Source of the DNA: Podarcis vaucheri
Taxonomy: Eukaryota
DNA: 64,000 nucleotides
NCBI GenBank assembly: GCA_965113315.1
Contig: OZ220367.1
Reading direction: 5' to 3' (one strand)
This document shows positions 49,906 to 62,818 of the stretch, in pieces. Position 1 is the stretch's first letter, and each line of letters begins with the position of its first letter. A program made the position numbers and the translations under genes. Under the pieces are notes generated by a model. The model was not told the DNA's origin, ran no database searches, and saw only the letters and a program-made list of their open reading frames with translations.

Positions 49906-50216
49906 TTATATCAGTTTGGTCACCTTCTTGATCCAGGGCACAAATTTGCTGACTTTTGTGTAAACACCAGGAGAGTCTTTTCGCCCACACCCATATCCCC
50001 AGGAAGTGATCCCTAGAATTACCCAGTGTCCACCTGACCTTTGACACATTAGCGGACCCCCACTATCCCCCTGGCAGCTGTCCACCCGGTTATCTTCAGA
50101 AATGTTTCCAGCGCACAGCATACGGTTAGTGAACTTCTTTCCATAACGGGATTTGCACACTCTTCTTGGGAGTAGGGGCACCGAGCCCTGGAGTAATGTC
50201 CTTGAGTATGACCTCC
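49906..50216 (-). CDS. neurotrypsin-like last coding exon (catalytic Ser, S1 Asp, stop)
   Basis: [36 protein letters not shown]...[14 protein letters not shown]...[36 protein letters not shown] at 49906-49908. Confidence 0.96.
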
Positions 50217-53200
50217 CTGAAACAATAATAGGTTATATATCTAGTGTAGCTCAGATAACCAAAAATCCTACCCACCAAACACAACTATTGTTCTCCGGCA
50301 CAATTTTGATTAGGTTAACATAGAAAAAAAATATCCTTCCCTAGGCCAGGATGGTATTTTAATGCAATGTGAAGTGGATTTTGATGTGATCTTCCTATAC
50401 AGTCGTATCTTGGATCCCAGACAGCTTGCAACTTGAACATTTTGGCTCCAAATGCTACAAACCCAGAAGTGAGCGTTCTAGTTGGCAAACATTCTTTGGA
50501 AGCAGAACGTCCAACAGGGCTTCCTCAGCTTCTGACTGAGTGCAGGAAGCTCCTGCAGCCAATCACAAGCCGTGCCTTGGTTGCCGAATGTTTTCAGAAG
50601 TTGAACGGACTTCCGGAACGGATTCTGTTTGACAACCAAGGTATGACTGTAATGTGTTTTTATGAGGCAGGGGAGCTGGTTTAAATAAAAAGTTGGCAAA
50701 ATGCTGGATGTGTTTACAAGACAGGATACGCAAAGGTTAGCTGTAACTAGCATCATGTGTCTAAAGGTAAAGGTAAAGGGACCCCTGACCATTAGGTCCA
50801 GTCATGACCGACTCTGGGGTTGCAGTGCTCATCTCGCTTTATTGGCCGAGGGAACCAGCGTGCAGCTTCCAGGTCATGTGGCCAGCATGACTAAGCCGCT
50901 TCTGGCGAATCAGAGCAGCGCACAGAAATGCCGTTTGCCTTCCCACCGAAGCAGTACCTATTTATCTACTTGCACTTTGACGTGCTTTTGAACTGCTAGG
51001 TAGGCAGGAGCAGGGACCGAGCAACGGGAGCTCACCCCGTCGCAGGAATTCGAACTGACGACCTTCTGATCGGCAAGTCTTAGACTCTGTGGTTTAACCC
51101 ACAGCGCCACCCGCGTCCCTATCATGTGTCTAGGCATACATTAATTCTGCAAAGTGAACTGCCCTAATCCTTGTAGAGCAGAGTAGTCTTGCAGTGGTTG
51201 CTGGAGCACTGCTTTCCACATGCTGCTGATCATAGGAAAAGAATTAGGGTGATCTGGGGACATGCAGACTGAGATCTGGGAATAATCCATGTGTATTATG
51301 TGATCATCTGCAGAGTTCTATAACGCCAGGGTAGCTGGCAGCCTATTCAGTAGTGCCTATCTGGGATTATCCCTCTTAAACCTTGCAACTATGAAAACAG
51401 AAACCTGCATAAATTTGTGGGTACATTTCCTGTGCACGGCCTTTCCTGTGCCCATTCTTCCTTCATACACTCCAACATCTTCCCAAGCACTTAGCAAATC
51501 TACTCAGTATTTACACATGTAGTTCACATACTGCTATGATACAGAGACACCGTAGTCATACGCTCAGTCTAATCAGCACATTTGATGGCATTGCCTGTCC
51601 CTCTATTTCCCAACAGTGGCAAATGGGTGCATCCGTTCCCAGGTCTTATGCGTTGGCAGTTTTTAAAGCTTCCAACAACTGGAATGTTTGCAAATATATC
51701 AATAAATGCCCTATCAGATGAGCAGGGAGGGTATTTAAATTAATTGCCAGAGTTCTCAGCCAACAGCTAGTGCGGACTGTGTTTACCCAAGTCTTTTTCT
51801 TTAGCAGAATTTAAAATGAATTTGGCAAAAAGACTGTTTTTCCTGCAAATCAGCTTGTTTTGTGCTTTAATTTGATGCTGAATTTGTCTCTGTATAGTGA
51901 GCGCCCTAAAAGATTATCCAAAGCTGGGTAGAACAGACACCCCAAATATTACTATCTCTTTCCATGTGAAAAATCCTGACACAATCTACAACTTACCTGT
52001 ATCTCCCCAGCCAGATATGACGCAGGCCTGTCTATCTATAGAAGACTTCTCCTTCCTCTCAGGAAGGCAGACAGGAAGGACATGGTGGCTGAAGGAAAGA
52101 CAGTTGCCGCTTTTGCCCCGAATTCTGACTAAAGCAATGTCATTGTCGTTGCTGCTAGACTGGTAGTTCCTATGAAGGACAATCTTCTCCACCGGCAGCT
52201 CTCTCTCGAACTCGTCCCTCACACCAGTGTGGTGGTCTCCCACACGCAGCAGGTAGCGCCGTACATCTACTCCAAACCTGGCCATGAGAGAATGATCAGT
52301 CAGTCCATTACTCATCCATAGAGATGACTCACCTTTGTCTCCTTTCCTTGTTCAGCGTTGGAATTTAGATTGCAGTCTCCCTGGGCACAGACCCAGCTTT
52401 TTTGTTCATGATATTCTGCAAGGCATCATGTTAACTGATGGCACTAATGTGAATACACAAGATCACCATCTCAAGACTGCCCCTCTCTTGTGTTCACAAA
52501 AGGTGGCCAATTGTGGGCTCTCTTTACTTAGGTGGGTATTTTAGGTGAGGGCCATAGGTTGACGGTTTTGAGTTGGGGACAGAATGGCAATCGTGCTTTG
52601 CACTTCTGCACTTTAAGGACTCTTTTACTTGCAAACAGCCTGTTACCTTTTGAAGCAATGTGCTGCCGTCAGCACCCAGCAGTTGCTGATAAGAGTTGCT
52701 CCACACAGCAGACGAGCATCTCTGTGAAACCCCTTTAGACGTAGCGAGACCTGCCAAGGCCAGCCTCCTCTGAAAGAGAAATGGGAGGCAACGTGAAAAA
52801 TACAGAGGTAGACGAAATAAGAAGAGAAGGAAGGGTTATGTGAAGGATGCTCCATGCTTCATTGATTTGCGTTTTTTCTTAAAGAAACTCTGTTAGCTAG
52901 TGGCACAACCTTCTAGAGTAAAGTGAGCGTCACCAGCATAAATATCATGACCGAAATGAGCTCATTGGTGTTTGGTGCTGTACAAGTACAGACAGCAAGA
53001 GGTCATCGCTAAGGGTATTCAACTGAAGGCTCGTGAAAAAGGCAATAAGAGGATGCAAAGAGAATGCACCTGCTTAGGTCCTGCCATAGCACTGGCAGAG
53101 GGGACTGGGGGCAGGTCATCCAACAGGACAGCCAAGGCAGTTTCAGTACCAAATCTGGATCAAAATGGGTCTAGATAAAGGAATCTAAGAATGCCTAGAG

Positions 53201-62200: not shown

Positions 62201-62818
62201 AAATAATAATTGTGAGCTATTGTTTCTTTTGGAGATTTAACATATTTAAACATTTGTATAAAACAGAAAATCTGCACCATTTCCACACTCTTCAAGATCT
62301 TCCCTTCTTACTGAGGGCAACCCACAAAAGTAGCATCAGGAGTTGTGTGTTGCTCTCCAATTGTGAAGTCAGTTTTTATATGCAAGGTTTTGTCTTGATT
62401 GAGATACCACAACTAGTCATAGTTGAGGAAGATTAACTATGGTTTGGTCCAGTGACTAAGATGACAAACCCTGACATCTTGCCAGCCAGCAAGCCAGAAT
62501 CAGAAACTGTGGTTTGAAGTGAGTTTGCACACCATGGGCTCTGCTAACAAATTTGTCATAATTGACCTACACAGCTGGCTAATCTAAAACCCCTTTGAAA
62601 AACAAAACAAAACAAAACAAAACAAAACAAAACAAAACAAAACAACACACACAATATTATTTAGACTTGCATTTACCTGAAGCCAAGCTGTCTGCAAGCC
62701 ACCTGGGCATTAATACCTGTCCAGCCGTCATCACACACGCATCCCCAGCTTCCATTGTGGTATACCTCCACCCTTCCTTCATTTGGTTTGTGGCCTCCTG
62801 CCAGTCGAATAGTACCTT
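49906..62818 (-). CDS. Neurotrypsin (PRSS12)-like SRCR-serine protease, 3' part; join of exons 62818-62677, 61382-61180, 59317-59176, 57870-57665, 56467-56389, 52769-52647, 52277-51997, 50216-49906; 5' exons lie beyond the right edge
   Basis: Two group A SRCR domains, each split over two exons; [12 protein letters not shown]|[20 protein letters not shown] activation segment; triad LTAAHC / NDIAL / GDSGGP; C-terminus [20 protein letters not shown]. All hallmarks of the neurotrypsin family; exon phases are consistent (1487 nt). Confidence 0.95.
50400..50649. mobile_element. Second Tc1/mariner-type MITE family (CAGTCGTA-type TIR)
   Basis: TA|CAGTCGTATCTTGG ... CCAAGGTATGACTG|TA; internal sequence shared, inverted, with 60054-60270. 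Confidence 0.82.
50764..51119 (-). mobile_element. Sauria SINE, full length, 12-bp TSD
   Basis: Reverse complement GGGACGCGGGTGGCGCTGTGGGTTAAACC...(ACCTTT)n; TSD atcatgtgtcta at 50752-50763 and 51121-51132. Confidence 0.93.
51997..52277 (-). CDS. neurotrypsin-like protease exon (catalytic Asp)
   Basis: [18 protein letters not shown]...[31 protein letters not shown]...CVISGWGDT(G). Confidence 0.96.
52647..52769 (-). CDS. neurotrypsin-like protease exon (catalytic His)
   Basis: [40 protein letters not shown](R). Confidence 0.96.
53963..54278 (+). mobile_element. Sauria SINE, 5'-truncated
   Basis: Starts at CTAGGGCTTGCCGATCAG, same body as the other copies, ACCTTTA tail. Confidence 0.9.
55402..55627. 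mobile_element. Tc1/mariner-pogo-type MITE
   Basis: TA|CAGTGGTACCTCGGGTTA ... TAACCCAAGGTACCACTG|TA; opposite orientation to the 45968 copy. Confidence 0.88.
56389..56467 (-). CDS. neurotrypsin-like exon with zymogen activation site
   Basis: (G)[17 protein letters not shown]|IIGGNKSL(R); cag|GT ... AG|gtacct; this frame is absent from the ORF track. Confidence 0.94.
57365..57398. repeat. (GT)n microsatellite
   Basis: Seen directly. Confidence 0.95.
57665..57870 (-). CDS. neurotrypsin-like exon, C-half of last SRCR domain plus acidic linker
   Basis: [68 protein letters not shown]. Confidence 0.92.
58221..58572 (-). mobile_element. Sauria SINE inserted in an older L2 3' fragment
   Basis: Same body; flanked by tgttgtgta on both sides; L2-type tail (ccctgtgatccttggatgaagggc) resumes after it. 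Confidence 0.88.
59176..59317 (-). CDS. neurotrypsin-like exon, N-half of last SRCR domain
   Basis: (G)[46 protein letters not shown](S). Confidence 0.93.
59836..60008. mobile_element. Old MITE with long imperfect TIRs
   Basis: ggtcacatccatgccattcatttaaagc ... ctttaaatgtatggtgtggatgtgatc. Confidence 0.6.
60054..60270. mobile_element. Second Tc1/mariner-type MITE family copy
   Basis: TA|TAGTTGTACCTTGGAA ... TTCCAAGGTATGACTG|TA. Confidence 0.8.
60308..60655 (-). mobile_element. Sauria SINE
   Basis: Same body, (AAAGGT)n tail on the plus strand. Confidence 0.9.
61180..61382 (-). CDS. neurotrypsin-like exon, C-half of penultimate SRCR domain
   Basis: [67 protein letters not shown]. Confidence 0.93.
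62598..62645. repeat. (CAAAA)n microsatellite just downstream of an SRCR exon donor
   Basis: Seen directly. Confidence 0.9.
62677..62818 (-). CDS. neurotrypsin-like exon, N-half of penultimate SRCR domain
   Basis: [46 protein letters not shown](S); tandem tag/cag acceptors (62821 or 62818); AG|gtaaat. Confidence 0.92.

Follow-up and report, generated by a model that had tools for sequence, protein, structure and literature searches.

A neurotrypsin-like protease gene next to ZSWIM8 in the lizard Podarcis vaucheri, a probable ancient paralogue of PRSS12 that is apparently lost in mammals

The DNA analysed here, referred to below as the window, is a stretch of 64,000 nucleotides from the lizard Podarcis vaucheri (contig OZ220367.1 of assembly GCA_965113315.1). 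Its minus strand contains a gene encoding a neurotrypsin-type serine protease, directly followed on the same strand by ZSWIM8, which continues to coordinate 1. Neurotrypsin (also called motopsin), the product of PRSS12, is a synaptic serine protease that cleaves agrin, at its alpha and beta sites. The protease gene occupies positions 49906-62821 and consists of eight exons, bordered throughout by AG acceptors and GT donors, that join into a frame of 495 codons (Table 1). All 14 internal splice sites are canonical, neither stops nor frameshifts interrupt the 495 codons, and the frame closes with a TAA stop at 49906-49908. Along the joined frame the order of domains is SRCR, SRCR, RKKR↓IIGG and trypsin domain. 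In agreement with this, Pfam searches carried out exon by exon recovered two SRCR domains, each distributed over two exons, and a Trypsin domain distributed over three. Database searches were queried with single exons, and the joined model was used for local alignment and for trees with the proteins that were retrieved.

The gene is not complete in the window. When the 828-residue 'neurotrypsin-like' protein of Podarcis muralis (RefSeq XP_077786786) was aligned to the window with tblastn, residues 331-828 were placed and none of residues 1-330. The first exon in the window, at 62677-62821, opens at a splice acceptor in the middle of the protein, so that further exons must precede it on the 5′ side. 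What the window contains is accordingly the 3′ 60% of the protease gene; the signal peptide, the kringle and SRCR1-2 lie past coordinate 64000. The full-length Podarcis muralis protein is composed of a Kringle, four SRCR domains and a Trypsin domain, and its exon structure matches that of the window gene. The joined model is 99.4% identical to it, with three mismatches and no gaps over 495 residues, and this near-identity independently confirms the exon borders. An earlier reading of this DNA, made from the sequence only, had described an uninterrupted neurotrypsin. That description is correct for the 495 codons in the window, but does not extend to the whole protein, of which only residues 331-828 are present.

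All motifs that the sequence-only reading had named were found. The activation site RKKR↓IIGG spans 56426-56403, with the furin-type RKKR at 56426-56415 and IIGG at 56414-56403, and the new N-terminus after this site reads IIGGNKSLR. The catalytic residues are His at 52660-52658 (in TAAHC), Asp102 at 52141-52139 (in DNDIAL) and Ser195 at 50064-50062, and the S1 residue Asp189 is encoded at 50082-50080. The two extra cysteines of the protease domain are located in ISNCW (52681-52679) and GNCLSF (52102-52100), and turtle PRSS12 has cysteines at the matching positions. Also present are the cysteines through which pro-peptide and protease are expected to remain linked, the one in the pro-peptide being encoded at 56450-56448. 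The gene therefore has the features that mark the neurotrypsin family: the mosaic architecture of a kringle, 3-4 group-A SRCR domains and a trypsin-like protease (its kringle and SRCR1-2 being seen in the Podarcis muralis protein), the catalytic triad with S1 Asp189, and a furin-type site with a pro-peptide cysteine.

In SRCR3 an extra cysteine stands beside the conserved one (GCVC in WGCVCDD, 62740-62760). The skink orthologue shares this residue, and SRCR4 of the window gene, reading WGSVC, does not have it. The extra cysteine may be unpaired or lineage-specific.

Evidence for transcription came from sequencing runs of a related organism. A 31-mer index pointed to DNA data sets containing the queried stretch and, in addition, to six small runs with ~10-14% of its words, a fraction close to that taken up by exons. 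In four RNA-like runs that were analysed over positions 51900-57899, contigs of 1.5-2.5 kb covered exons only. These contigs joined position 52277 to 52647 in four runs, 56467 to 57665 in four runs, and 52769 to 56389 in two runs. The skipped segments have CT..AC ends on the plus strand, corresponding to GT..AG on the strand of the gene. Since such joints occur solely in spliced RNA, the protease gene is transcribed, and it is spliced exactly as modelled at these three borders. Eight of the ten exonic differences between the RNA contigs and the window are synonymous and two are non-synonymous.

Relatives of the gene were retrieved by querying exon 7 (window positions 51998-52276, minus strand) against 1.84 billion representative proteins. 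The matches formed two tiers. Identities in the first tier ranged from 69 to 89% (gecko, skink, goose, painted turtle and coelacanth); those in the second tier were near 50%, and its full-length member is the turtle protein annotated as 'neurotrypsin'. A word search with the skink protein returned 'neurotrypsin-like' entries from squamates, tuatara, turtles, crocodilians, birds, caecilians, frogs, sharks, rays and a chimaera, one bird cluster alone having 362 members. The same species, among them squamates, turtles, birds, frogs, rays and the coelacanth, also have a 'neurotrypsin' that is 54-59% identical. Both genes are present in each of the assemblies of Podarcis muralis, P. raffonei, P. 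lilfordi, Lacerta agilis and Zootoca vivipara. Because the two genes are located on different contigs in these five lacertids (~96-102 Mb and ~75-84 Mb, respectively), the window gene is not a tandem or recent segmental copy of PRSS12. The window protein is 59% identical to the PRSS12 protein of a lacertid (Zootoca) as against 99.4% to the Podarcis 'neurotrypsin-like' protein, and over the 495 residues its identity to PRSS12 is 57-60%. Between lizard and shark, identity amounts to 68% for the window gene and 74% for PRSS12.

A maximum-likelihood tree was calculated from 53 rows and 500 columns under LG+C20+F+G4, with support given as ultrafast bootstrap / Shimodaira-Hasegawa-like approximate likelihood-ratio test (SH-aLRT). 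PRSS12 proper formed one clade (clade A, 94/99), which contains sharks, ray-finned fishes, coelacanth, lungfish, amphibians, mammals and sauropsids. The window gene fell outside clade A, and hence does not group with the PRSS12 orthologues. It was placed in a second clade (clade B-core, 95/93) together with genes of a chimaera, sharks, rays, amphibians, turtles, a crocodilian, birds and squamates. This is the outcome that the sequence-only reading, which had proposed such a phylogeny as a check, anticipated. Constraining the duplication to sauropsids was rejected (difference in log-likelihood (lnL) 337, p-AU 1e-14 in the approximately unbiased (AU) test). Since cartilaginous fishes, amphibians and sauropsids are represented in both clades, the duplication predates the jawed-vertebrate radiation and took place before sharks and bony vertebrates split. 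The alignment contains 135 columns that are invariant across both clades. The window gene differs from PRSS12 only modestly: about ten columns are nearly fixed between the clades and two are strictly fixed; as only two are strictly fixed, there is no clear change in the active site. At site 324, one of these columns, which lies within a stretch that aligns with the calcium loop, the clade of the window gene has Arg and PRSS12 has an acidic residue.

Ray-finned fishes likewise have two genes: a search with a sturgeon protein found two each in bichir, sturgeon and teleosts. One of these, of the stickleback and carp type, is PRSS12 proper. The placement of the stickleback protein in clade A fits the prss12-ndst3 adjacency that has been reported for stickleback and zebrafish (PMC4359090). 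The other gene forms a long-branched group of its own. Of its 70 cells at ten diagnostic sites, 50 have the clade-B state and 6 the clade-A state, and joining it to clade B was not rejected (p-AU 0.44). A first, quick tree, in which some teleost 'neurotrypsins' grouped with the window gene, had suggested a misnamed teleost prss12; this idea was dropped, since ray-finned fishes have two genes and the stickleback/carp type belongs to PRSS12 proper.

Rooting with molluscs and lamprey gave long-branch artefacts, and the lamprey and Physella proteins were left out of the tree. The closest lamprey match to exon 7 (Petromyzon marinus, 699 residues) is annotated as 'urokinase-type plasminogen activator-like' and aligns in its protease domain alone. 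This protein behaved as a rogue: it has an odd composition and a branch of 5.7 changes per column, and it fell inside clade A. No clear lamprey neurotrypsin turned up among the exon-7 matches; hagfish have one.

Together these results strongly indicate that the window gene is the lizard orthologue of 'neurotrypsin-like' (NTL), a kringle-4 SRCR-protease gene that is an ancient paralogue of PRSS12, originated before the split of sharks and bony vertebrates and was apparently lost in mammals. We assign this conclusion a probability of roughly 0.85. Cartilaginous fishes, amphibians, turtles, crocodilians, birds and squamates have retained the family; ray-finned fishes and the coelacanth very probably have too, and mammals seem to have lost it. 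The simplest reading is that the jawed-vertebrate ancestor had two genes and that the second was lost in mammals. Retention in reptiles, as the sequence-only reading had worded it, is far too narrow a description, since all jawed-vertebrate classes that were sampled, apart from mammals, have the gene.

The downstream neighbour of the gene is ZSWIM8 rather than an NDST3 arranged tail to tail. Pfam identified the SWIM finger of ZSWIM8 at 28021-28269 and TPR_ZSWIM8 at 13614-13895. The stop codon of the protease gene and the ZSWIM8 CpG island are separated by about 6.4-7.4 kb on the same strand, in accordance with the ~6.5 kb from the ZSWIM8 promoter that had been estimated earlier.

Several repeats are present in and around the protease gene. 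An interspersed repeat of ~316 nt occurs in five copies, in both orientations and 84-93% alike (45000-45368, 50755-51083, 53963-54278, 58209-58537 and 60301-60629), which lie in introns and downstream of the gene. A second repeat is found at 55398-55630 and 45997-46216. In the RNA-like runs these two repeats reach a summed contig depth of 1e5, and they look like abundant elements of the short interspersed nuclear element type. Short open reading frames containing LANQSS...TCTLTCF derive from them. In addition, a 90-nt element is present in two copies that are 91% alike (47184-47273 and 63024-63113). Its halves are mutually reverse complementary (GGGACTACAATTCCCATCATCCC...GGGATGATGGGAGTTGTAGTCCC), so that it resembles a miniature inverted-repeat element. 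A (CA)n microsatellite (57358-57411) is located in the intron that separates the activation exon from SRCR4.

Table 1. Exons of the protease gene and the start of ZSWIM8 in the window
Feature	Coordinates	Strand	Evidence
SRCR3 first half, residues ~331-379 of 828	62677..62821	-	AG/GT; Pfam SRCR E=1e-14; tblastn 98%
SRCR3 second half	61180..61382	-	AG/GT borders; Pfam; tblastn
SRCR4 first half	59176..59317	-	AG/GT borders; Pfam; tblastn
SRCR4 second half + acidic linker	57665..57870	-	AG/GT; Pfam; RNA joint 56467/57665
Zymogen-activation exon	56389..56467	-	AG/GT; RNA contig joints at both ends
Trypsin exon 1 (catalytic His, ISNCW Cys)	52647..52769	-	Pfam Trypsin E=5e-12; RNA joints 52769/56389, 52277/52647
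Trypsin exon 2 (Asp102, GNCLSF Cys, Cys122)	51997..52277	-	Pfam Trypsin E=3e-15
Last coding exon (Asp189, Ser195, stop)	49906..50216	-	Pfam Trypsin E=3e-24
ZSWIM8 promoter CpG island + first coding exon start	42016..43500	-	island 42500-43500; ATG at 42016

Some results weigh against an intact, ancient paralogue of PRSS12 that was lost in mammals, or against parts of this interpretation. No AATAAA or ATTAAA is present within 2.4 kb past the stop codon (47440-49905), the first being located at 47440, ~2.5 kb away. Because a canonical poly(A) signal is absent from these 2.4 kb, either the 3′ untranslated region is long or a variant poly(A) signal is used; the coordinates of the RNA contigs give a 3′ untranslated region of at least about 950 nt. 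With respect to the loss in mammals, no mammal appeared in the tier of the window gene among annotated proteins (the 120 best hits listed of 8000 scored candidates), a result that did not include a search of genomes. The separate PRSS12 gene was seen in five close relatives and not directly in this genome. When the tree was rooted with molluscs, the root attached to the long ray-finned branch with a support of 55/53. Hagfish grouped weakly with clade A (70/98), and therefore the split is not assigned to a particular round of duplication. As to the chromosomal context, NDST2 is not located within the 64-kb window, and the argument from paralogous blocks draws mainly on the literature and on established knowledge, the adjacency to ZSWIM8 having been shown in this window only.

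How the two genes arose is best discussed in terms of their surroundings. The 4q26 and 10q22 regions are paralogous blocks, which share the pairs NDST3/NDST2, SEC24D/SEC24C, SYNPO2/SYNPO2L and CAMK2D/CAMK2G. PRSS12 and NDST3 on a 4q26-type block would be mirrored by NTL and ZSWIM8 (and NDST2) on a 10q22-type block. PRSS12 is arranged tail to tail with NDST3 in human, chicken, lizard, frog, coelacanth and fishes (PMC4359090). The genes listed for the human ZSWIM8 block are NDST2, CHCHD1, FUT11, SEC24C, SYNPO2L, CAMK2G and PLAU (PMC6444755); a neurotrypsin-type gene is not among them, in agreement with the sequence-only reading. In birds the gene is located on chromosome 6, where it is annotated as NTL in chicken GRCg7w (PMC9516828). 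Taking these data together, we consider a whole-genome-duplication origin of the PRSS12/NTL pair rather likely. The gene had initially been proposed to be the whole-genome-duplication sister of PRSS12. The trees and the AU test bear out an ancient and separate paralogue, whereas the whole-genome duplication is what we infer from the paralogous blocks.

The best surviving alternative is that the paralogue arose by a small-scale duplication before the jawed-vertebrate radiation, and that its placement next to ZSWIM8 is secondary. This would be compatible with the flanking paralogous genes having been shown in no more than one species, and with the position of hagfish, which leaves the timing open. 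We nevertheless regard it as unlikely, because the two genes reside in blocks, 4q26 and 10q22, that have long been held to be paralogous, and on different chromosomes in lizards and birds. In addition, both the 10q22 gene list (PMC6444755) and the PRSS12-NDST3 adjacency (PMC4359090) are confirmed by publications. Much less probable is that this lizard has a copy that is decaying or no longer functional. Two points would be in line with decay: the window does not extend to the 5′ 40% of the gene, and a canonical poly(A) signal is lacking close to the stop. Against this stand an uninterrupted frame with 14 canonical internal splice sites, the conservation of every catalytic residue, spliced transcripts in four runs, the 8:2 ratio of synonymous to non-synonymous differences, and the 68% identity between lizard and shark. 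Finally, that the gene is the PRSS12 orthologue itself, relocated beside ZSWIM8 in a genome with a single neurotrypsin, would account for a domain architecture, activation site and extra cysteines equal to those of PRSS12, but is hardly credible in view of the identities (59% to Zootoca PRSS12 against 99.4% to Podarcis 'neurotrypsin-like'), the cost of 337 lnL for forcing the sauropsid copies together and, for the family as a whole, a clade separate from PRSS12 and the presence of both genes on different contigs in five lacertid assemblies, which answers the translocated single copy that had been named at the outset as a possible refutation.

With NTL taken as an ancient paralogue of PRSS12, the way in which its product would work can be outlined on the basis of the sequence and of existing knowledge of neurotrypsin and chymotrypsin-fold proteases. 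The protein is predicted to be secreted as a multidomain zymogen, which a furin-type convertase would cleave behind RKKR; the IIGG N-terminus freed in this way would then form the active site. A disulfide bond between the pro-peptide cysteine and Cys122 would keep the protease tethered to the kringle-SRCR stalk, and extracellular substrates would be cleaved after Arg or Lys, as specified by S1 Asp189.

No protease other than neurotrypsin is known to cut agrin at the synapse, and in humans the loss of neurotrypsin causes intellectual disability. A second conserved gene of the same build exists in chick, Xenopus, zebrafish, lizards and sharks, and mammals appear to be without it. It is conceivable, although we are inclined to doubt it, that jawed vertebrates other than mammals rely on two neurotrypsin enzymes, in which case NTL is a second extracellular furin-activated protease that shares agrin processing or has a substrate of its own, and that mammals have PRSS12 only. 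Experiments on neurotrypsin and agrin in chick, frog and zebrafish would then have been interpreted unaware of a possibly redundant paralogue. Loss-of-function and expression work on 'neurotrypsin' in chick, frog and fish may be confounded by the second gene and should allow for it. The gene also offers a clean case of an ancient paralogue lost in mammals, which probably originated by whole-genome duplication within the 4q26/10q22 paralogon. The value of the present analysis lies in this evolutionary placement and in the functional question that it opens.

Entries for the gene, from hundreds of species, already exist in RefSeq and UniProt, so that neither a gene discovery nor a new type of molecule is involved. 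Its names in the databases stem from automatic annotation and are inconsistent. The clade-B gene of Zootoca is now called 'neurotrypsin isoform X1/X2', the same name as that of true PRSS12. The two genes of loach, tetra, shad, arapaima and reedfish are both named 'neurotrypsin' or have their names swapped with '-like'. In the searchable literature, the sole mention of the vertebrate gene is an annotation remark in papers on assembly errors, according to which a 'duplication' in zebra finch is false and the gene on chromosome 6 is NTL (including PMC9516828). Other papers in which 'neurotrypsin-like' occurs deal with invertebrate homologues, a mouse study and a list of toad-venom proteins. No paper in this literature was found to discuss the gene as an ohnologue of PRSS12 that mammals have lost, or to address its function.

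Among proteins of known structure, a search of the PDB gave the protease domains of plasminogen, plasma kallikrein and uPA as the nearest ones, other proteases with SRCR domains scoring no better, and for the protease domain of a neurotrypsin it offered no solved structure for comparison. The hepsin/TMPRSS family, complement factor I and enteropeptidase likewise have an SRCR domain before a trypsin-fold protease that is disulfide-tethered after activation. They differ from the window gene product in being membrane-anchored or in having other modules, and in their single, divergent SRCR domain. The similarity to PRSS12 is much closer. Both proteins consist of a Kringle, four SRCR domains, each encoded by two exons, and a chymotrypsin-fold protease (PRSS12 of lizard and macaque was checked), and both have the furin-type R-x-K-R↓IIGG site, the His/Asp/Ser triad, S1 Asp189 and the two extra cysteines of the protease domain. 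In contrast to PRSS12, the window gene adjoins ZSWIM8 instead of NDST3, has no mammalian member among the matches listed, and belongs to a clade that evolves slightly faster (68% versus 74% identity between lizard and shark). It also differs by its 57-60% identity, by its separate clade, which predates the split of sharks and bony vertebrates, and by the Arg at site 324. That clade is the one that holds the 'neurotrypsin-like' entries of birds, turtles, frogs and sharks, and the entries of this name in RefSeq and UniProt (Podarcis muralis XP_077786786; chicken NTL on chromosome 6) represent the same gene, without any material difference.

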